Shown in pieces: positions 6,421-59,814 of a DNA stretch of 64,000 nt (its first letter is position 1; each line of letters opens with the position of its first letter). The stretch lies in sequence record PQ227241.1. One strand, 5' to 3'. The notes below the pieces were generated by a model. The model made no database searches. It worked only from the letters and a program-made list of their open reading frames with translations, and was not told the DNA's origin. Made by a program: the position numbers and the translations under genes.

Positions 6421-6662
6421 TATTCATCCCATCCTTTTACTTCGTACCAGAGACAGGCACTATTGTATTCAACAATGTAACCGTCTTTACGGAGGATTTC
6501 CGCTTGACGATTATTCATCTTCCCTTCAACTGGCGTGTTCTCGTTGCTGTAATCGAAGTTTACCTCTGAATCACCAGCGAGCGCCCGTTGCTTAATTTTA
6601 GCATGGATTGATTCCATACCAGCTTCTTTATAAAGAAGTTCACGCAGCTCTTGTAATGTCAT
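6420..6662 (-). CDS. Hypothetical protein
   Basis: Start/stop overlaps with both neighbours. Confidence 0.7.
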   Translation of the reverse strand: MTLQELRELLYKEAGMESIHAKIKQRALAGDSEVNFDYSNENTPVEGKMNNRQAEILRKDGYIVEYNSACLWYEVKGWDE

Positions 6663-6868
6663 GTAACTACTCCTACAATAAAGACTCGACTGATTTCATT
6701 GAGATAAGCGAGCACTAGAAGAATACCTGTCCAGATAGCGATATTCAGTGTAGTACGCTTCTCTTCCAATCCAGGATTAGTGGAATTAACTATTCGATGA
6801 CAGAAAGCACCGAATAAACCAAGACCCATCGCCACGAAGATGATGGTGAACCAACCAAGGTAGATCAT
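6659..6868 (-). CDS. Small 2-TM membrane protein (paralog of 9347-9565)
   Basis: MIYLGWFTIIFV...LAYLNEISRV shared with 9347-9565. Confidence 0.75.
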   Translation of the reverse strand: MIYLGWFTIIFVAMGLGLFGAFCHRIVNSTNPGLEEKRTTLNIAIWTGILLVLAYLNEISRVFIVGVVT

Positions 6869-9346: not shown

Positions 9347-9565
9347 TTAGGTTACCATCTGCTCTATATAAACTCGGCTGATTTCATTTAAGTAAGCGAG
9401 TGCCAATAGAATACCAGCCCAAATAACAATTTTTCGAGTAGTCTGTTTTTCTATTACACCTGGGTGTGATTCACGAATACTACGGTGACAAAATACATAA
9501 AACAGACACAGACTCATTGTAACAAAGATAATGGTAAACCATCCCAGATAGATCATTTTCTTCAC
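9347..9565 (-). CDS. Small 2-TM membrane protein (paralog of 6659-6868)
   Basis: Same N- and C-terminal motifs as 6659-6868. Confidence 0.75.
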   Translation of the reverse strand: MKKMIYLGWFTIIFVTMSLCLFYVFCHRSIRESHPGVIEKQTTRKIVIWAGILLALAYLNEISRVYIEQMVT

Positions 9566-15089: not shown

Positions 15090-15142
15090 CCTTTTTACAT
15101 TAATTGAAGGTTAAATATCAAGTTAGTAATATACTGTTTAAA
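15090..15142. repeat. 53-bp direct repeat, copy 1 (promoter+UTR+RBS)
   Basis: Identical to 16941-16993. Confidence 0.9.
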
Positions 15143-16940: not shown

Positions 16941-16993
16941 CCTTTTTACATTAATTGAAGGTTAAATATCAAGTTAGTAATATACTGTTTAAA
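16941..16993. repeat. 53-bp direct repeat, copy 2
   Basis: Identical to 15090-15142. Confidence 0.9.
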
Positions 16994-17480: not shown

Positions 17481-17510
17481 GTAATATACTGTTTAAATAT
17501 GTTTGAATAC
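17481..17510 (-). promoter_or_regulatory. phiKZ-type early promoter
   Basis: Minus strand GTATTCAAACATATTTAAACAG-TATATTAC. Confidence 0.8.
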
Positions 17511-19485: not shown

Positions 19486-19829
19486 TCTTAATTAACTCCG
19501 ATAAATAATAGTAGTATAGTAAAAAGCACTTAGGTATATTTCTATTTTAAGCTATATTGCGGATAAAATAAAACCTAAGGGTACATAGCGGGTTATTGTT
19601 TAAAGCTCTTAAATAGCGTGGTAGAACGATATTGGACTATATGGCTGTAACCCTTAAGACACTAAGGCTACAAGGATTTTTAAGATAAAGATATCCAATG
19701 TACCATAGTATGCTTTTACAATAGATCAACTAAATTCATTTAAAATGGGTCGTAAAAATACTAAGTTGATCTAAAGATATGTTGAATACTTTTTCACATG
19801 AACTTACGACTCACAATTGGAAATTAACA

Positions 19830-22118
19830 ATGTTAAAAACTATCATTAAACTAGACGGTACTGAAGAAGCATACTCACCTGCTAAGATCAATGGTTGGGG
19901 TGAATGGGCAGCCCAACATCTTGGTGATAAGGTAGATTGGAGCAGTGTTGTAATGGATGCTGTTCAAGCTCTTGGTGATAAAACTTCATCACAAGAACTA
20001 CAATTACAACTTATTGAAGAATGTCTAAATCGCAAGACCTGGTCATATTACCTGATGGCTGGTAGACTATATGCGATTTATCTTCGTAAGAAGTTCTATG
20101 GTCTAAATGGCATCCCAACTGTTAAAGCGCTTCAAACCAGGATGCGTAAAGATGGTATCATTGTTAAATTAGATTATAGTAGTAAAGAATACGCTCAGAT
20201 TGAAAAGATCATTGATCACGATCTTGACCTACTTTGTCCGCATTTTTCACTTCATCACATTCGTGGAAAGTATGCTCTACGTAATCGTAAAACTGGTCAA
20301 GAATATGAAACTGCACAATTTGTGTACATGCGTATGGCAATGGCATTAGCTGAGAAAGAACCAGTTGAAACCCGCATGACTCATGTTGAGAATTTCTATA
20401 AACTATTATCTAATAAGATTCTTAGCGCTCCAACACCTAATTATGTTAACCTAGGTACTAAGCTTCGTGGTTTTGCATCATGTTGCCTATTTGCTTCTGG
20501 TGATAATGGTGTATCACTGGCAATGGGCGATTATATTGCTAACATCATGACCCAATCATCAGCAGGCATTGGTGTTAACTTAATGACTAGGTCAATTGGT
20601 GATCCTATCCGTAATGGCCTAATCATTCACCAAGGTAAGAAACCATACATCGATGTAATGGGTAAAGCAGTAAGGGCTAACCTACAAAATGGTCGAGGTG
20701 GTGCTGTTACGTGTTACTACAGTGCTTTCGATCCTGAAGCAGATATGATTACTCAGCTACGTAATCCACGTTCTACTGAGGATAGGAAGAACCGTGATCT
20801 TCACTATGCATTCCTAAGTAATAAGTTCTTTGCTAAGAAAGCGGCTCAGAAAGATGGCATGATCTTTGTATTCAATCCATTTACTGCTCCAGATCTACAT
20901 GATGCTTTCTATAGTGGTGATATTGATAAGTTTATTAAGCTTTATGAAAAATATGAAGCGGATCCTAAATTTGAGAAAACTTATGTAAATGCTCGGGATC
21001 TTCTCAAATCAATGCTAGTTGAAGCATATGAGACTGGAACCATCTATTCAGCTCAAATTGATGAACTCAATCATCATACACCATTTAAAGAACCTATTTA
21101 CAGTTCTAACCTATGCCTTGAAATCGCAGAACCCACTAAGCCTTACTATCGAATGGAAGATCTTTATTCTAGTGAGGATCACGGGCGCGGTGAGATTGCT
21201 ACTTGTTCACTGGCTGCTATTGCAGTGGATAACGTTCCTGATAAGCAAACTTATGAAATGGCGGCTTACTACGCACTTAAGATGATTGACTATTGTATCC
21301 TTAATGCAGAGTATGCTTTCCCACACCTTGCACTAACCGCTAAGAATCGAATGAGTGCTGGTGTTGGTATCATGGGTCTAGCCACACATATGGCACGTGC
21401 TGGCCTTAAATATAGCAGCGATGCTGGTAAAGCTGAAATCCACTTCATTGCTGAACGGCATATGTACTTCCTTATCAAGGCGTCACTTAAGATTTCTAAA
21501 GAACGCGGGAATGCGCCTTGGATTCATAAGACTAAATGGCCAGAGGGATGGACTCCACGTAAGACTTATAATAAGTCAGTGGATACTATCATTGAAGGTG
21601 GCTTTGAAGAACTTTATCCATGGGATGAGCTAGAGAAAGAAATTAAGGAGAATGGTGGTATTGCACACTCCGTACTAGCTGCATACATGCCTGGTGAAGC
21701 ATCATCTAAGGCACTAGGGTCAACTAATGGTCCATACCCGGTACGTCGCCTAATTCTTAATAAGACTGATAATGGTGCACGTGTGCTATGGGCTGCTCCA
21801 TATGGAGATGATGACTCCTATGTGTATGAATCAGCTTATGATATCCCCACTAAAGATCTTATTGATTGCTATGCCATTATTCAAAAGTGGACTGATCAAA
21901 CAATCAGTGCGGACCTCTACCGACGCATTGTAGGTTCTGAAAAGATCTCTTCTAATGAAATGCTAGGTAATCACTTCTACATGGTGAAACGTGGAATGAA
22001 AACCCGGTATTATGTAAATCTAGAAACAGCAGCAGGACTTGATATTAAATCACTTGAACGTGCTGTTGAGGTAACTAATACTGAAGTTGGGTGTGCAGGC
22101 GGTTCGTGCACTCTTTAA
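19830..22118 (+). CDS. nrdA: Ribonucleotide reductase class Ia alpha subunit
   Basis: N-terminal ATP-cone-like start, SAPTP, ASCCL, SSNLCLE catalytic motif, TRYY, C-terminal CAGGSC; start set at ATG 19830. Confidence 0.95.
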   Translation: MLKTIIKLDGTEEAYSPAKINGWGEWAAQHLGDKVDWSSVVMDAVQALGDKTSSQELQLQLIEECLNRKTWSYYLMAGRLYAIYLRKKFYGLNGIPTVKALQTRMRKDGIIVKLDYSSKEYAQIEKIIDHDLDLLCPHFSLHHIRGKYALRNRKTGQEYETAQFVYMRMAMALAEKEPVETRMTHVENFYKLLSNKILSAPTPNYVNLGTKLRGFASCCLFASGDNGVSLAMGDYIANIMTQSSAGIGVNLMTRSIGDPIRNGLIIHQGKKPYIDVMGKAVRANLQNGRGGAVTCYYSAFDPEADMITQLRNPRSTEDRKNRDLHYAFLSNKFFAKKAAQKDGMIFVFNPFTAPDLHDAFYSGDIDKFIKLYEKYEADPKFEKTYVNARDLLKSMLVEAYETGTIYSAQIDELNHHTPFKEPIYSSNLCLEIAEPTKPYYRMEDLYSSEDHGRGEIATCSLAAIAVDNVPDKQTYEMAAYYALKMIDYCILNAEYAFPHLALTAKNRMSAGVGIMGLATHMARAGLKYSSDAGKAEIHFIAERHMYFLIKASLKISKERGNAPWIHKTKWPEGWTPRKTYNKSVDTIIEGGFEELYPWDELEKEIKENGGIAHSVLAAYMPGEASSKALGSTNGPYPVRRLILNKTDNGARVLWAAPYGDDDSYVYESAYDIPTKDLIDCYAIIQKWTDQTISADLYRRIVGSEKISSNEMLGNHFYMVKRGMKTRYYVNLETAAGLDIKSLERAVEVTNTEVGCAGGSCTL

Positions 22119-22218: not shown

Positions 22219-23382
22219 ATGTCTACTAAATCTCAACTACCAAAGAAAATCTTCAATGTTGCTAAGAGTGATTATCATCTACCGGAAATTATTCTTGGAG
22301 ATGATCCAGGTCTACTAGATTCAATCCACACTCATTATCCTAAAATGTGGGAGCTATATAAGCGTCTAAAGATGCTTGATTGGGATGAGCTAGAATTTGA
22401 CTTTTCCACTTGTCTAGTAGAATTTGAAACGTGTGATAAATCAACTTATGACATGATGATTAAGACACTGGCCTGGCAATGGGAAGCTGACTCTGTAGCC
22501 AGTCGTTCCATTGTTAATATTCTATCACCTGTCATGACAGATTCACGAGTATGGGCGGGATATGTACGTATTAATGATAATGAAGACGTACATGCTTTAA
22601 CTTATTCTGAAATTGTACGTAATAGCTTTAAAGATCCTAAAGTTATTCTAGACGAAATTCTTAGGGTAGAAGAAGCACAAGAACGAATGGTTGCAGTAGC
22701 CCGCACTATGGGTGAAGCACATGACGCAGTTCATGCGTATGCTCTTAATCAGGTACCCAATGATCAAGAACTTTACAATAAAGTATTCATGTTCTTCATC
22801 GCTCTATATTTCCTAGAACGTATCCAGTTCATGGCATCCTTTGCAGTAACCTTTGCTATTGGTCGTACTGGTGCATTCCAGCAAATTGCAGCCGCTGTTA
22901 AGAAAATTGCCCAAGACGAATTCGAAATCCATGCACAATATGGACAAGAAGTTATTCGTGCACTACTGGCAACTGAACGCGGTAAACTCGCTTACAGTCA
23001 ATGTAAAGATAAAATCATTGAACTACTATGGGAAATTGTAAAGACTGAAGTTACCTGGGTTAATTATCTATTCTCTGAAGGTCGTGAACTAACTGGTGTT
23101 AATGCGACTAAACTTATTAACTGGGTACTTTTCAATGCTAATGCCGCAGCAACATTCCTAAGTATTGAAAATGATGTTGTAGAACAGTATCAAGTGGAGT
23201 TTAAAGAATCAGCTGGATTTGATTTTGTTTGGCCAGAGAAGAACCCACTTCTTTATATGGAAGACTACCTAGATATTTCATCAACCCAAGCATCTCCTCA
23301 GGAAGAAGAGAAGCCTGATTACATGGTCAACGTTGTAAATGATGTTGGTGAAGAAGAAGAATTTGAGGTTGACTTCTTATGA
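22219..23382 (+). CDS. nrdB: Ribonucleotide reductase class Ia beta subunit
   Basis: ADS, EDVHALTY (iron ligands and radical Tyr), LERIQFMASF, QDEFEIH. Confidence 0.95.
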   Translation: MSTKSQLPKKIFNVAKSDYHLPEIILGDDPGLLDSIHTHYPKMWELYKRLKMLDWDELEFDFSTCLVEFETCDKSTYDMMIKTLAWQWEADSVASRSIVNILSPVMTDSRVWAGYVRINDNEDVHALTYSEIVRNSFKDPKVILDEILRVEEAQERMVAVARTMGEAHDAVHAYALNQVPNDQELYNKVFMFFIALYFLERIQFMASFAVTFAIGRTGAFQQIAAAVKKIAQDEFEIHAQYGQEVIRALLATERGKLAYSQCKDKIIELLWEIVKTEVTWVNYLFSEGRELTGVNATKLINWVLFNANAAATFLSIENDVVEQYQVEFKESAGFDFVWPEKNPLLYMEDYLDISSTQASPQEEEKPDYMVNVVNDVGEEEEFEVDFL

Positions 23383-23792
23383 TTAAGATTATCGCATTCG
23401 TAGTTTTAATGTGGTCCACTGTCCTATTTGCAGCAACTGAAGTAAAATCAACTACAGATGGTATTATTGCACATTCAGAATGTCAGCTAGTTGCTAAAGA
23501 TAGTAGTGTTGTCGGCACTACTGTTGGAGGTGCGGTTGGAGCCACCGCAGGCGCTGTGTTAGGTCGAGCAATCTTTGGTAAATCTGGAGGTTGGGTAGGT
23601 GGTTTAATCGGTGGTGCCGCAGGCGGCGCAGTCGGTAATAATGTTAGTGCTACTGAAACATTTCAATGTAAACTGATTGTTAATACAGATGGCAAGCAGT
23701 ACATGGTTCAAACAGTTACCAATGAAAAACCAAAGGTTGGTGATAAAGTCACTGTTGTTGAAATGAATGATGGTACACGAGATATAATGTAG
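23379..23792 (+). CDS. Glycine-zipper 2TM envelope protein (YcfJ/SlyB-like)
   Basis: Signal peptide then GTTVGGAVGATAGAVLG...GGLIGGAAGGAVGN. Confidence 0.75.
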   Translation: MIKIIAFVVLMWSTVLFAATEVKSTTDGIIAHSECQLVAKDSSVVGTTVGGAVGATAGAVLGRAIFGKSGGWVGGLIGGAAGGAVGNNVSATETFQCKLIVNTDGKQYMVQTVTNEKPKVGDKVTVVEMNDGTRDIM

Positions 23793-49932: not shown

Positions 49933-49962
49933 GTAATATACTGTTTAAAATGCTTTAAATAC
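49933..49962 (-). promoter_or_regulatory. phiKZ-type early promoter
   Basis: Minus strand GTATTTAAAGCATTTTAAACAG-TATATTAC. Confidence 0.8.
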
Positions 49963-52617: not shown

Positions 52618-52640
52618 GTAATATAGATTTCAAAAAAAAT
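52618..52640 (-). promoter_or_regulatory. Early promoter, core only
   Basis: Minus strand TTTTTTTTGAAATC-TATATTAC. Confidence 0.55.
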
Positions 52641-52651
52641 TTAATGTAAAA

Positions 52652-52673
52652 GCCCTCTCCTTTGGGAGAGGGT
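52652..52673 (-). terminator. Intrinsic terminator
   Basis: gccctctcc-tttg-ggagagggt. Confidence 0.75.
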
Positions 52674-52681
52674 TTATGACT

Positions 52682-52789
52682 TTATTTATATTTTTTCTTA
52701 TGAGTGTGGTAAATATAGCTAAATAGCATACCGATTGACATTGATACAGCTACCATACCCACATAGAAAAGTTCATTACTAAGTTGCAT
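52682..52789 (-). CDS. Single-pass membrane peptide (35 aa, not in ORF track)
   Basis: [35 protein letters not shown]; GAGGA RBS; flanked by terminators. Confidence 0.6.
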
Positions 52790-52850
52790 TAGATTTCCTC
52801 AAATAGTTTAATTTATCCCACCTAGTTTTAACCGTCCAGTCGGTTAAAAA

Positions 52851-52868
52851 GAGGACCCGAAGGTCCTC
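52851..52868 (-). terminator. Intrinsic terminator (UUCG)
   Basis: gaggacc-cgaa-ggtcctc, U-tract on minus strand. Confidence 0.8.
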
Positions 52869-52871
52869 TAA

Positions 52872-53111
52872 TTATTTCTTATAACTCTCAGGGCATCCCA
52901 TTTTGAGTTTGCCATCCTTTGGGTCTTCAGCGAATAATACTTCATCTGGACACTTCTTAACAGGAGTGTCCTTCGCCTTATCTTCCCATTCTACAACAGG
53001 CATTTCTAATTTCTTACGAAATTGATACGTATCATAAAGAACATACGTAATCATTCCCATAAGAGAGATTACCCATACCCATGCAACAATTAGGATGATT
53101 CTAGTTATCAT
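52872..53111 (-). CDS. Small membrane-anchored protein
   Basis: N-terminal TM helix, two Cys in soluble tail. Confidence 0.7.
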   Translation of the reverse strand: MITRIILIVAWVWVISLMGMITYVLYDTYQFRKKLEMPVVEWEDKAKDTPVKKCPDEVLFAEDPKDGKLKMGCPESYKK

Positions 53112-53478
53112 ACAACTCCTCGCCGACTATATTGAAACACCCATTACTGAGTTTTTCAGTCAGCATCTCACCAAGATCACTTCCCTCGCTCTTTGCCAAA
53201 AGCTTAAGTGCGGGATCAGTGAGATTTTGGTATATTACATCGACATTATCCAATGCGATATTAATAGCGAGTGCCTTATCACTCTGGTTTTTATCTATGG
53301 CAATGGATAGTTCATCTTGCAGTATTGCATACATCTCCAATGGCTCACCGCCATTAGTGTAGAATTGAACCATATTCTTTGCCAAGCTGTGCAGCACGTA
53401 GCAAGATGACACGGTTACGGGTTGTGCATTAACCGACATTGCTACCATAGTGATAATGAGCGAGAAGACGTATTTCAT
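53101..53478 (-). CDS. Secreted two-Cys helical protein (array member)
   Basis: Signal peptide MKYVF...VNA; SSCYVL and NGCFNI. Confidence 0.75.
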   Translation of the reverse strand: MKYVFSLIITMVAMSVNAQPVTVSSCYVLHSLAKNMVQFYTNGGEPLEMYAILQDELSIAIDKNQSDKALAINIALDNVDVIYQNLTDPALKLLAKSEGSDLGEMLTEKLSNGCFNIVGEELYDN

Positions 53479-53510
53479 CCTATTTTCCTTTTGAAAGTAT
53501 TCGATATGAA

Positions 53511-53966
53511 TTAAATGAGTTCAACAATTACCATGTGAGTGAATTTCTCACCAATATGCTTCATGCAGTAATTGCCATAATACCCGCTGATAAAAGCTGC
53601 CAGATTAGGAGTAGTCACATTGTAACCTTGACTACGGATATAATCATGGATCTCTTTACTGTTAAGGTCATTATTGATTTTATTAAGACTATTGAATACG
53701 AATGTTAACGCAATCCAATTATTGGTATCCAACTCATCTTTGAGTTTAGCAGAGTTGTTGAGCATAAGCACACCAACTTCATCTGCGCTATGACCTTCAC
53801 TCATTCGAAATACAGCTTGTTTAGTAATGGTTTCAACCATTGCACACGACTGCACAGTGAGTTGAGCATCTTTTTTACCAATCTTGATTTCAGCCATTGC
53901 GGTATTGAACATGATACCGGTAATGGCAATGAGACCAGCGAAAGCTGCTGCAATTACATTTTTCAT
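53511..53966 (-). CDS. Secreted two-Cys helical protein (array member)
   Basis: Signal peptide ending AMA; QSCAMV and NYCMKH. Confidence 0.75.
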   Translation of the reverse strand: MKNVIAAAFAGLIAITGIMFNTAMAEIKIGKKDAQLTVQSCAMVETITKQAVFRMSEGHSADEVGVLMLNNSAKLKDELDTNNWIALTFVFNSLNKINNDLNSKEIHDYIRSQGYNVTTPNLAAFISGYYGNYCMKHIGEKFTHMVIVELI

Positions 53967-53983
53967 TTTAAATCCTTCTTCAT

Positions 53984-54367
53984 TTATTTAATGGTAAGAA
54001 TAGTAATTTTTTCAGGATTTACTGGAACTTTAATTTTAGATTTATGTTGGAGAAACTCAACAACCACCATAGACTTATCCATTTTATACACTTCACATAC
54101 TTTGACAAGCCTATCTACTACGCAACCAATTTTACCGGCATTTTGAGAAAAGAAAGATTTTGCTTTTCTAATAGCCTCGCGTTTCTCAAGCATTTCCATA
54201 CGCATATTTTCAATATGTTTATCGCGTTGAACACGATTAAACTTACGCATATGTCGTTCGATCTTACTAATTTCAGAAGAGTGTAATGAATAAGCAGCAG
54301 CTTCTTTCAGTTTCTCATATACTTCCACTGCCATTACCACGTGATCATCTTCAAAATTTCTTTTCAT
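53984..54367 (-). CDS. Basic hypothetical protein
   Basis: 127 aa, helical N-half and SH3-like C-half. Confidence 0.65.
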   Translation of the reverse strand: MKRNFEDDHVVMAVEVYEKLKEAAAYSLHSSEISKIERHMRKFNRVQRDKHIENMRMEMLEKREAIRKAKSFFSQNAGKIGCVVDRLVKVCEVYKMDKSMVVVEFLQHKSKIKVPVNPEKITILTIK

Positions 54368-54380
54368 ATCTATGCCTTTT

Positions 54381-55175
54381 TCACTGTTTGATTAAATTTG
54401 ACACTGCTTCTTGTTTACATTGAGTATTCATCCATAATGCAATGTCTTTGGGTTCTTGTCCAGTTTCCACCATATCGATAATGATACGGGTATTACGTTG
54501 TGCTTTCTCACGGGCATTTAACATATCAGGATCATTAATAATGAATTCCCTACCCATAACTGGATCTAATCCAATATAAGCTTTAGATGCAATAGTTCTC
54601 ACCATTGCTTCATATTGGTCACATCCACGTTCAGTTAATACAAGGTTATCTGCATTGGCACTACCGCCAAATAGCAAACCTAGGAATCCATAGAAAAAAG
54701 TGTGACGTATTGTCTTCCAACAAATACGCATCTCTTCATTTTTTGTATAAAGCTTTTCCCAATCAAACATTAAATAGAAACTTTCTTTTTGGATAGAAGG
54801 GTGTAACCAAATAGGTTTAATACTTACTTCAAGAAGTTTACTATTTGGATTTTTACCAATAAAGATAACTTCAACAATGGCTCGTGCTAAAGCATCTTTT
54901 TCTTTACCATTCCATCCAAATTTTATTTCATCAGCCGTGATATAAAGACGTATTCCGTCACCCACGTATTTGGGTAACCAAACAGCTTTACCTAGTTGCA
55001 TTGGAACACTATTAGGGATCCCCCCAACCATCCAGGTAGCATTGGTGAAATGAATAGCGACATCATCATTTAACCACTTTAGAATAGCTGGCCTTACCCA
55101 ACTATCTACCAAATTACCACATGTCAATGCAGCTAGCATAGCCATGAGCATAATGACAATATAGATACTAATCAT
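54381..55175 (-). CDS. Membrane protein fused in frame to a secreted two-Cys module
   Basis: N-terminal TM; internal ATG 54731 starts MRICWK...GGSANA signal peptide, then RGCDQY and TQCKQE. Confidence 0.65.
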   Translation of the reverse strand: MISIYIVIMLMAMLAALTCGNLVDSWVRPAILKWLNDDVAIHFTNATWMVGGIPNSVPMQLGKAVWLPKYVGDGIRLYITADEIKFGWNGKEKDALARAIVEVIFIGKNPNSKLLEVSIKPIWLHPSIQKESFYLMFDWEKLYTKNEEMRICWKTIRHTFFYGFLGLLFGGSANADNLVLTERGCDQYEAMVRTIASKAYIGLDPVMGREFIINDPDMLNAREKAQRNTRIIIDMVETGQEPKDIALWMNTQCKQEAVSNLIKQ

Positions 55176-55178
55176 AGT

Positions 55179-55538
55179 CTACTCCAAGTTAAATTTAGTA
55201 CCAATTGCTTCAACACAATTTTCAGCTAACCTATCTAGGATAGCTCCATTGGTAAATCCTTTTCGTTTATTTACTCGAATATCAACTAAGTTTAACTTGG
55301 CATATACCGCACCTGCATAGAACTCCAAGTCATCCATATCCTTACGAGAGATCATGTCTAACTGCATCATTATCTCAAATTGGGATAGGTTCTTATCATA
55401 AAGCTCAGTTGCTTTTTGTGAAAGATTTACTGCCACATTACATGATTTCTTAGTAATACCCACTTCTACAGCGTGGGCAGGCTGACATGCAATGGACAGG
55501 ATTGGCAGGAAAAGGAATAATAGCCAATTCTTAAGCAT
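55179..55538 (-). CDS. Secreted two-Cys helical protein (array member)
   Basis: Signal peptide ending AHA; KSCNVA and ENCVEA. Confidence 0.75.
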   Translation of the reverse strand: MLKNWLLFLFLPILSIACQPAHAVEVGITKKSCNVAVNLSQKATELYDKNLSQFEIMMQLDMISRKDMDDLEFYAGAVYAKLNLVDIRVNKRKGFTNGAILDRLAENCVEAIGTKFNLE

Positions 55539-55550
55539 GTTGTACCTCCA

Positions 55551-55958
55551 TTATTTTAGAGTAAGTGGTTTTGCTTCAAACGCACCTGCCGCTACACAAC
55601 GCTGGAAATAACCATCAATGATGAATTTCTCAGGAGTGGTCTTATAGACTTTAGCAGCATTTGTTGCACGTGGCAAACTTGCCTCAATTGCCATTTTATC
55701 TACCTTAGACCATAGGTAAAATAGACCAGTGAGTTCTTCAACTTTAGACTGGTTGGTCTTTAGATCTTTAGTGTTATTAAGGATATAATGAATCCTTTCA
55801 TAAGTCTTCATTTGCACTTCAGTTACAGATGCACCTTTTACAAACAATTCATCTGCCTGTTTTACAAACTCGATGCATGAATCACGATTAGTGTACATGA
55901 CAGCCGAGTTAGCAGTGATAGTTACAATAGACAACATAAATGCAATTACATATTTCAT
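55551..55958 (-). CDS. Secreted two-Cys helical protein (array member)
   Basis: Signal peptide MKYVI...ANSA; DSCIEF and QRCVAA. Confidence 0.75.
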   Translation of the reverse strand: MKYVIAFMLSIVTITANSAVMYTNRDSCIEFVKQADELFVKGASVTEVQMKTYERIHYILNNTKDLKTNQSKVEELTGLFYLWSKVDKMAIEASLPRATNAAKVYKTTPEKFIIDGYFQRCVAAGAFEAKPLTLK

Positions 55959-55984: not shown

Positions 55985-56248
55985 TTAACTATTGGTTTCA
56001 CCACGAGTATTGAATTCTAAATCCAATACAACTTTAGTAAATTCTTCCAGTGCACCACCCTCGTAGATGAGTGGGTCACTGTCACCCCGGTACATGCTAC
56101 CTACCGGTACTTGACCACGAAACACCATCAGCATATCGTTTTTTACTATGACATGATGTTCATCCCCGACAGCAATGTCTTGGATGTGTCTCCAGCGTTC
56201 ACGCAGTAAGCTGCAAGCGCACCATACGGATTTCAAACGTTCAGTCAT
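55985..56248 (-). CDS. Hypothetical early protein
   Basis: 87 aa, GAGGG RBS, first gene after early promoter. Confidence 0.7.
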   Translation of the reverse strand: MTERLKSVWCACSLLRERWRHIQDIAVGDEHHVIVKNDMLMVFRGQVPVGSMYRGDSDPLIYEGGALEEFTKVVLDLEFNTRGETNS

Positions 56249-56281: not shown

Positions 56282-56311
56282 GTAATATAGCTTTTTAAAT
56301 AGTTTAAATAC
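56282..56311 (-). promoter_or_regulatory. phiKZ-type early promoter
   Basis: Minus strand GTATTTAAACTATTTAAAAAGC-TATATTAC. Confidence 0.75.
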
Positions 56312-56328
56312 AAAAAAAGATAAATAAA

Positions 56329-56348
56329 ACCCTCCCCGAAGGGAGGGT
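56329..56348 (-). terminator. Intrinsic terminator (UUCG)
   Basis: accctccc-cgaa-gggagggt. Confidence 0.85.
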
Positions 56349-56366
56349 GTATATTAAGTAATTATT

Positions 56367-57023
56367 TTAACATACAATTTCATTATCAGAAAATAGTTTA
56401 TTATATTCTTTTAGTGCATCCCCACCAACCATAGTACACCTGCCATAGAGAACAGATATAGCCAGATCTTTAATAGCGGGGTGACAATTATTTAACTTAC
56501 TGATTAGTTGAGCTTTCTCAGTCAGATACAGTTCAGCAAAATCAGGCTTATCATTAACAATCGACCACATGTTTGAAATGGAATCTAGTAACTTAAGAGA
56601 TTGACCACTCCATGAAATGCGAGAAAGTCTTTCATGTTGTAAACTAATCCTAGTTTTACGATTACCTTCGTAAGTTACATTTGTTAGTTCAGTTACTAAA
56701 TTAACAACAGGGATTGAGAATAGTTTAGTTAGATCAGAAGCAGTTACAGCAGTATCCTCAATTACATCATGTAACCATGCTGCTTTATAAGCAGCGTGAG
56801 ATAGGTCGAATAATTGCGCCATCTCAGCTACTTGTAATAAATGATGCCAGTAAGGTTTTCCTGAACCATCTCGCAATTGACCAACAGCAGTATGTGCCGC
56901 AATGGCATATGATGCAGCCATTGCATTACCCGCATTGGAATATTTGCCATTACCTAGATGGTTAGTTAAGAGAATATTCTCTTTCCCTCCTTCTAGAATA
57001 TCGATAATTTCATTCATTAGCAT
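56367..57023 (-). CDS. HD-domain small alarmone hydrolase (Mesh1/SpoT-HD-like)
   Basis: AHTAVGQLRDGSGKPYWHH, AAWLHDVIEDT, LVTELT, LKLLDSISN; no synthetase domain. Confidence 0.8.
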   Translation of the reverse strand: MLMNEIIDILEGGKENILLTNHLGNGKYSNAGNAMAASYAIAAHTAVGQLRDGSGKPYWHHLLQVAEMAQLFDLSHAAYKAAWLHDVIEDTAVTASDLTKLFSIPVVNLVTELTNVTYEGNRKTRISLQHERLSRISWSGQSLKLLDSISNMWSIVNDKPDFAELYLTEKAQLISKLNNCHPAIKDLAISVLYGRCTMVGGDALKEYNKLFSDNEIVC

Positions 57024-59352: not shown

Positions 59353-59360
59353 GTAATATA
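59353..59360 (-). promoter_or_regulatory. Early promoter, core only
   Basis: TATATTAC on minus strand between terminator and gene. Confidence 0.5.
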
Positions 59361-59784: not shown

Positions 59785-59814
59785 GTAATATACTGTTTAA
59801 ATATGTTTGAATAC
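59785..59814 (-). promoter_or_regulatory. phiKZ-type early promoter
   Basis: Minus strand GTATTCAAACATATTTAAACAG-TATATTAC, identical to 17481-17510. Confidence 0.85.

Follow-up and report, generated by a model that had tools for sequence, protein, structure and literature searches.

An early accessory operon of phiKZ-type jumbo phages encoding a family of putatively exported two-cysteine helical proteins

Phage proteins that are exported early into the host envelope are an already known kind. Spackle (Sp) of phage T4 is a small, early, signal-peptide-bearing and mostly helical periplasmic superinfection-exclusion protein with an internal disulfide, which targets the tail lysozyme and is dispensable in single-phage laboratory growth. 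Llp of phage T5, which is not known to be a helical bundle, and the T1-type Cor proteins are early envelope-exported lipoproteins that act by receptor blocking. Here we describe an operon, spanning genes gp246.1 to gp253.1 in phiKZ numbering, on the minus strand of a 64,000-nucleotide stretch of DNA from sequence record PQ227241.1 (hereafter the window), in which several small proteins combine a predicted export signal with a pair of conserved cysteines. The window comes from a jumbo phage of the phiKZ type that infects Pseudomonas aeruginosa. A 3.8-kb stretch around the operon matches Pseudomonas phage vB_PaeM_HUST_1 with 100% identity and phiKZ with 99.5%, and the 48 phage records matching this stretch are all from Pseudomonas phages. 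Public annotation labels the operon genes only as hypothetical. What is new relative to the described proteins is the fold family, its multiplicity and the existence of a membrane-fused version.

The operon products resemble Spackle in that both are small, early, signal-bearing helical phage proteins with a cysteine pair, and in being dispensable. However, Spackle is encoded by a single gene, whereas the present proteins form a multi-copy family with lipoprotein and membrane-fused members, and no Pfam, PHROG or PDB sequence match relates the two. With Llp and Cor, the operon product gp248 shares the predicted character of an early envelope-exported phage lipoprotein, but there is no similarity to either in Pfam or PHROGs. 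In saposin-like proteins (SAPLIPs) disulfides tie the first helix to the last. Members such as saposins A and C and Na-SLP-1 offer the closest, though only weakly similar, solved fold to the gp248 model, with a compact bundle of four to five helices in which the first and last are tied in this way. The differences are that the phage family has one cysteine pair as against three, possesses an extra small strand pair joining its N- and C-terminal parts, and would reside in the bacterial periplasm rather than in a eukaryotic lysosome or granule; the saposin six-cysteine pattern is missing, and no saposin family is found among the Pfam matches of 15 members. An earlier note on this DNA had offered Tai4/Rap1a, HdeA and antiholins as comparators, and these did not hold up in sequence searches, which gave no matches to them. 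Tai4/Rap1a and HdeA are likewise small helical periplasmic proteins with a disulfide, but they are not phage proteins, and no cognate effector gene lies next to the operon, whose neighbors are an HD hydrolase and small unknown proteins. The T4 antiholin RI is an exported periplasmic phage protein concerned with envelope events after secondary infection. Unlike in that system, the phiKZ holin has a small periplasmic domain and a cytoplasmic regulator (PMC12894885), and the operon is early, distant from the lysis cassette and without similarity to RI. Spackle, Llp, Cor, Tai4/Rap1a, HdeA, Ivy and antiholins are all absent from the 50 PDB fold matches listed for the gp248 model.

Searches of Pfam, NCBIfam, PADLOC and PDB sequences returned matches at chance level only, and neither a function nor a family name for these proteins was found in Pfam, NCBIfam, PADLOC, PHROGs or the literature searched, which agrees with their being regarded in the earlier note as an undescribed system. 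PHIKZ247-253 are named in no paper of that literature. The genes go unmentioned in the texts on the early infection vesicle and on the antisense-oligomer screen, and two reviews (PMC13282480, PMC12908238) do not mention periplasm, signal peptides, lipoproteins or secreted proteins.

The two-cysteine family and its predicted fold

Five open reading frames (ORFs), all on the minus strand, had been singled out as divergent secreted two-cysteine proteins, and they are indeed present as gp247 (55551-55958, 135 aa, Cys28 and Cys121), gp248 (55179-55538, 119 aa, Cys33 and Cys108), the C-terminal 116 codons of gp249 (54381-54731), gp251 (53511-53966, 151 aa, Cys41 and Cys134) and gp252 (53101-53478, 125 aa, Cys26 and Cys114). 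In all five phiKZ proteins the first cysteine is at mature position 8-16 (about 8-15 had been proposed) and is always preceded by serine or glycine, while the second lies 11-17 residues before the C-terminus; gp247 and gp252, the first and last of the set, both begin with MKYV, as had also been noticed.

A hidden Markov model (HMM) built solely from gp248 orthologues (8 sequences) was searched against a background of 981 ORFs from the whole public phiKZ genome, and recovered gp252 (E 7.4e-5) and gp251 (E 3.4e-4), in both cases through the mature region, with the next match at 0.35. gp251 and gp252 are linked to each other by hhalign (87%), and Psa21 gp333 is recovered by the family profile with E 6e-3. 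In an alignment of 15 sequences with 16-40% identity, the positions of Cys33 and Cys108 of gp248 are the sole invariant columns. Less sensitive comparisons see little of this relationship: pairwise BLASTP among the paralogues is informative for gp251 and gp252 only, and the members are spread over PHROGs 15284, 22400, 26535, 27482 and 22383, all of unknown function, with gp251 to the phrog of gp248 as the only cross-match (E 0.0026). On this profile evidence gp248, gp251 and gp252 are one homologous family. With a profile of the mature domain of the family, gp247 comes first among the ~978 non-member ORFs (E 0.13), and its collinear hhalign alignment with the family, 82 columns long, brings both cysteines and two motifs into register (P 0.014); gp249 scores above E 1 against the family HMM. 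Based on fold and collinear alignment, gp247 and the C-terminal domain of gp249 very probably belong to the same family, although this is not proven. The relatedness claimed in the earlier note for all five proteins is thereby upheld for three and probable for two.

No further family members were detected by profile search among the 981 ORFs. The secreted protein encoded at 23379-23792 on the plus strand was considered as a member and ruled out, being a glycine-zipper protein. This phiKZ gp304-type protein has a signal peptide and two cysteines, its gene adjoins those for ribonucleotide reductase (19779-22118 and 22219-23382), and its Churi homologue occurs in the 15-minute proteome.

An AlphaFold2 (AF2) model of gp248, computed from a 15-sequence alignment, has a predicted local distance difference test score (pLDDT) of 88.7, with ten-residue blocks at 91-98 over most of the mature domain. 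It comprises five helices and a small strand pair that links the N- and C-terminal ends beside both cysteines; Cys33 is located in the first helix (H30-48) and Cys108 in the last (H97-110). Given this conservation and topology, the single cysteine pair most likely forms one disulfide that staples the bundle. The AF2 model of gp247 is also helical but of low confidence (pLDDT 52), so that the helical body foreseen for every member is well modeled for gp248 and poorly for gp247.

Comparison of the gp248 model with the BFVD by Foldseek retrieved its orthologues in PhiPA3, Psa21 and 201phi2-1 together with more proteins of PS119XW, 201phi2-1 and Phabio. Among these are Psa21 gp333 (probability 0.99) and PS119XW gp302 (probability 0.90), the latter being the orthologue of gp247 (hhalign 86%). 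Two more matches, of 151 aa (TMq 0.61, as template modeling score) and 264 aa (probability 0.99, TMq 0.59), are to nameless entries, which by length and context only would be gp251 and gp249, respectively. The best non-self BFVD match of the gp247 model is again the 151-aa entry equal in length to gp251. Against the PDB, the gp248 model has no Foldseek match under E 0.001. The top matches are saposins and a saposin-like protein (3s63, 2gtg, 4uex, 1m12 and 2dob) and the prophytepsin entry 1qdm, with probabilities of 0.44-0.89, root-mean-square deviations of 3.1-3.7 Å and non-significant E-values of 0.4-1.4; the target TM is 0.55-0.68 for the five saposin entries and 0.14 for the 430-residue 1qdm. 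The nearest solved fold of the modeled domain therefore appears, weakly, to be saposin-like.

Export signals, the gp249 fusion and evolutionary constraint

Signal peptides were called heuristically from a basic n-region, an uncharged hydrophobic h-region and a small-x-small site. The N-termini of gp247, gp251 and gp252 display all three, with a hydrophobic stretch 13-17 residues long, as expected of substrates of signal peptidase I, and L003, a diverged relative, also retains the signal. In gp248 these features are joined by a lipobox with Cys18, and the protein is best read as a predicted lipoprotein-type precursor processed by signal peptidase II rather than as a plain Sec substrate, because the lipobox is canonical in 8 of 12 orthologues (phiKZ, L003, PhiPA3, Phabio, PS119XW, P0023, P0025 and P0026); it is missing in P0021 and P0022, and a few relatives retain only a signal peptidase I site. 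The attribution of a Sec signal peptide to each of the five ORFs accordingly stands for gp247, gp251 and gp252 and is modified for gp248; 54381-54731 is no gene of its own but starts at an internal methionine of the gp249 ORF.

That ORF (54381-55175, 264 aa) encodes an N-terminal membrane segment, a cysteine-free middle domain of ~125 aa, a signal-like second hydrophobic segment (54651-54731) and the two-cysteine domain (54381-54650). Because basic residues precede and acidic residues trail the second hydrophobic segment, the middle domain is predicted to be cytoplasmic and the two-cysteine C-terminal domain to lie outside. The full ORF is kept in L003, where both halves have a ratio of nonsynonymous to synonymous substitution rates (dN/dS) of 0.09. 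A contig from JGI metagenome 3300076123 (L015) carries a distant gp248 homologue without a lipobox (592-960) followed by a gp249-like gene (975-1607; BLASTP 2e-5) with a membrane segment, a middle domain, a signal-like segment and an (S/G)-C domain. The pairing of gp248 with gp249 is therefore older than the genus Phikzvirus. We did not adopt a gene of its own for the C-terminal part of gp249 as the main reading, given the conserved N-terminal half under purifying selection and the same architecture in the metagenomic contig; an additional internal start may exist.

Of 371 crude phiKZ genes, some 17 satisfy the signal heuristic, and roughly nine of these are credible as secreted. Four of them, plus gp249, fall within six adjacent genes of the operon, so that by this heuristic about half of the phiKZ proteins that are credibly secreted are encoded there. 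The clustering is not due to chance.

The family is restricted to Pseudomonas chimalliviruses, in whose genomes from one to at least five copies were detected. HMMER with gp248 over 1.84 billion representative proteins found 9 relatives. When the five-paralogue alignment was used in a word-index protein search, all matches were phiKZ-type proteins apart from one diverged contig, and tblastn against phages found no relatives of gp247, gp249 or gp251 outside Phikzvirus. Orthologues of gp248 are present in PhiPA3, Phabio, PS119XW, Psa21 and 201phi2-1. Counted within ±4.5 kb of each gp248 homologue, phiKZ has five copies, PS119XW three that are adjacent, Psa21 two, and PhiPA3 and Phabio one each; these are minimum counts, as fold matches point to extra diverged copies in PS119XW, Phabio and 201phi2-1.

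Relative to L003 the genes of the unit are 59-96% identical, and the five family proteins 70-86%, with dN/dS of 0.07-0.23 wherever computable. For gp248 and gp251, saturation of synonymous sites precludes a ratio, and dN is equally low. The fastest-evolving gene of the unit is gp250 (59% identity, dN/dS 0.23). On these values diversifying selection was rejected. The paralogues are old and constrained by purifying selection, with no visible current arms race, and their diversity is therefore one of old paralogy.

Several public records of these genes call for comment. In MT995928 (phage U5), gp247, gp248 and gp249 are labeled MazF, DNA methylase and methyltransferase, for which we find no support. 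The gp252 homologue of Churi, gp055 (L014 5166-5438), is recorded without a signal peptide because its start was set at an internal methionine, and PS119XW gp300 (L007 4408-4836) is annotated 25 codons too long. The clusters of gp247, gp249, gp251 and gp252 include many short partial 'Klebsiella pneumoniae' proteins from contigs of 200-400 bp, which probably reflect contamination of assemblies with phiKZ-type reads.

The transcription unit and its early expression

An early promoter had been proposed at 56282, and the octamer at 56282-56289 is in fact the end of a ~35-nt motif (56282-56318, minus strand) comprising a T-run, an AT-rich block and the octamer, which would drive the operon. The motif recurs with its octamer at 59785-59792, 49933-49940, 17481-17488, 16977-16984 and 15126-15133, and in looser form at 52618-52625 and 59353-59360. 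This gives 6-8 intergenic sites in the window (at least five besides the one at the operon), every copy being on the gene strand. Early promoters of phiKZ have been described as an AT-rich element near -10 with a T-rich tract upstream (PMC8244752, PMC7598289), and judged by sequence the operon motif fits this description of promoters of the virion RNA polymerase. Beyond the motif itself, the copies at 15133 and 16984 have ~45 nt of downstream sequence in common, pointing to a duplicated leader.

The unit is bounded by three 8-bp GC hairpins with U-runs, at 56329-56348, 52850-52869 and 52653-52672 (z ~ -3.7 to -4.0), and the motif copies flanking the operon (56289, 52625 and 59360) come directly after a terminator hairpin. 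The intrinsic terminator at 52850-52869 (-15.8 kcal/mol, z -3.8), previously placed at 52851, follows gp253 and has a U-run one U below the scan criterion. The one at 52653-52672 follows gp253.1, with the next early-promoter octamer, 52618-52625, coming afterwards.

Within the unit, the first gene, gp246.1 (55985-56248, 87 aa), lacks a signal peptide and has no family matches in Pfam or PHROGs. Inside the cluster, gp250 (53984-54367) encodes a basic, cytoplasmic-looking protein of 127 aa without a signal peptide, whose N-terminal part matches phrog_18482, of unknown function. Small membrane proteins are gp253 (52872-53111, 79 aa), with one membrane segment and a tail bearing two cysteines, and gp253.1 (52682-52789), a 35-aa membrane peptide encoded between the two terminators. 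Small membrane proteins with cysteine-bearing tails occupy the position of gp253 in Phabio and PS119XW; homology to gp253 was considered and only positional analogy was found. Two other small membrane ORFs of the window, 6659-6868 and 9347-9565 (both minus strand), have near-identical N-terminal sequences and are apparent paralogues.

The operon is located downstream of gp246 (56367-57023, minus strand), an HD_4 domain protein (Pfam E 7e-12) whose naming varies among records between phosphohydrolase, (p)ppGpp synthetase and GTP pyrophosphokinase. A gene for an HD hydrolase lies just upstream of the gp248-like gene or cluster in phiKZ, PhiPA3, PS119XW and L003.

Published data bear on expression and requirement. 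Both 15-minute proteomes have only 19 non-virion proteins in common, and one of them is the gp248 homologue of Churi (99% identity), which was not toxic when overexpressed in PAO1; the gp252 homologue gp055 was found in one of the two proteomes (PMC11849849). Transposon sequencing of phiKZ recovered 4-15 insertion sites per gene from PHIKZ247 to PHIKZ253.1, as against zero in shell and capsid genes; an orf252 insertion mutant was isolated and is viable, and the region is part of a large accessory arm proposed to be the site of host-interaction genes (PMC12676376). The operon is hence early, conserved and dispensable in the laboratory on PAO1, as would be expected of genes whose importance lies in phage competition or on particular hosts.

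Possible roles in the host envelope

The best overall explanation, which we favor tentatively, is that this early accessory operon supplies an exported five-helix family for envelope protection. Its structural and export part appears quite likely. The functional part, namely envelope guarding or superinfection exclusion, is drawn by analogy to T4 and T5, which have periplasmic or lipoprotein exclusion factors, and we regard it as the likeliest function while leaning towards doubt. Under this proposal, the operon would early on supply the host cell envelope with a set of small five-helix proteins, each with an export signal and with cysteines in the first and last helix that would form one bundle-stapling disulfide as in saposin-like folds. 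gp248 would be the lipid-anchored prototype by virtue of its lipobox, gp251 and gp252 soluble periplasmic paralogues, and gp247 a probable, more diverged member. In gp249, an N-terminal membrane segment and a cytoplasmic domain would be fused to a two-cysteine domain that follows the signal-like second membrane segment. These proteins would bind envelope components of the infected cell such that later attacks on the envelope fail, be it by superinfecting phages and their wall-degrading tail enzymes or by other envelope-targeting agents. The surfaces of the paralogues, whose mature isoelectric points (pI) range from 4.2, in the most acidic member gp252, to 8.8, would suit different partners.

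Several points weigh against this proposal, in which we infer export, disulfide and function alike. Export follows from heuristic signal calls, and the disulfide is predicted from conservation and from the topology of the model. The membership of gp247 and the gp249 C-terminal domain is statistically insecure (E 0.13, P 0.014, and BFVD entries that are unnamed). Pfam, NCBIfam, PADLOC, PHROGs and PDB sequence matches give no functional homology; in particular, Spackle and Llp/Cor have neither sequence matches in Pfam or PDB nor a place among the 50 listed PDB fold matches. No exclusion factor of phiKZ-type phages is named in either review, superinfection being unmentioned in PMC13282480 and given one general mention in PMC12908238. 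Finally, the weak saposin-like resemblance is equally compatible with lipid binding.

This last alternative, that the saposin-like bundle opens to accommodate phospholipid, lipopolysaccharide or lipoprotein acyl chains and thereby, over the long course of a phiKZ infection, affects the supply of membrane, the integrity of the outer membrane or the formation of vesicles, is unlikely, though it deserves to be taken seriously. Saposins and a saposin-like protein are the top PDB fold matches of the gp248 model, the placement of the cysteine pair, in the first and the last helix, is the one characteristic of saposin disulfides, and gp248 itself is predicted to be lipid-anchored. However, small helical bundles readily match one another and the Foldseek E-values of 0.4-1.4 are not significant, two of the three saposin disulfides lack a counterpart, and no alignment member has a Pfam saposin match. 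Less likely still, in our estimate, is a takeover of the host envelope in which the paralogues block or redirect pili, secretion systems, cell-wall enzymes or stress sensors for the benefit of the phage rather than as protection from rivals. Early expression, location in the accessory arm proposed for host-interaction genes (PMC12676376), the strongly differing charge of the paralogues, and the enrichment of infection-specific host transcripts for the envelope-stress sigma factor AlgU (PMC8244752) are all in keeping with such a role, but overexpression of gp248 had no effect on growth and all the genes are dispensable on PAO1.

That the proteins are not one family at all, with gp247 and the gp249 C-terminal domain resembling gp248, gp251 and gp252 by convergence and the operon being a set of unrelated exported proteins, we consider improbable. 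The HMM scores of gp247 and gp249 are indeed not significant, hhalign probabilities are 3-5%, the gp247 model is poor, and the BFVD entries assumed to be gp251 and gp249 are nameless. Yet gp247 tops the ~978 non-member ORFs with a collinear alignment that keeps both cysteines and two motifs in register, the gp248 model matches both PS119XW gp302 and the 264-aa entry, the three types are adjacent in PS119XW, and all five have their first cysteine within mature positions 8-16. Control of lysis timing, whereby the periplasmic domains sense secondary infection and gp249 signals to the holin regulator in the manner of T4 RI lysis inhibition, seems quite improbable. In its favor, phiKZ lysis is slower at high multiplicity and gp143 controls the holin from the cytoplasmic side (PMC12894885), and gp249 is the sole member that joins a periplasmic two-cysteine domain to a cytoplasmic one. 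On the other hand, the operon is early rather than late and lies ~95 kb from the lysis cassette gp141-144, in PhiPA3 and Phabio only a gp248-type copy was seen, with no gp249 near that gene, and there is no holin or antiholin similarity in Pfam, PHROGs or the 50 PDB fold matches listed. It is conceivable, though we would call it a long shot, that gp249 is a transmembrane relay whose periplasmic saposin-like domain senses an envelope event such as the puncture by a second phage or membrane damage. Its cytoplasmic domain would then inform intracellular phage processes, for example lysis timing, with the soluble and lipid-anchored paralogues serving as co-sensors or decoys.

Returning to the early operon as a source of exported envelope proteins, research on nucleus-forming jumbo phages has focused on the cytoplasm, with its vesicle, shell, protein import and transcription. 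The definition of this family offers a concrete handle on the action of such phages at the cell envelope, and corrects several public annotations. If the saposin-like reading is true, the phage repertoire would come to include a lipid-interacting fold, and if gp249 does act as a relay, no envelope-sensing module would have been described before it in a nucleus-forming phage.

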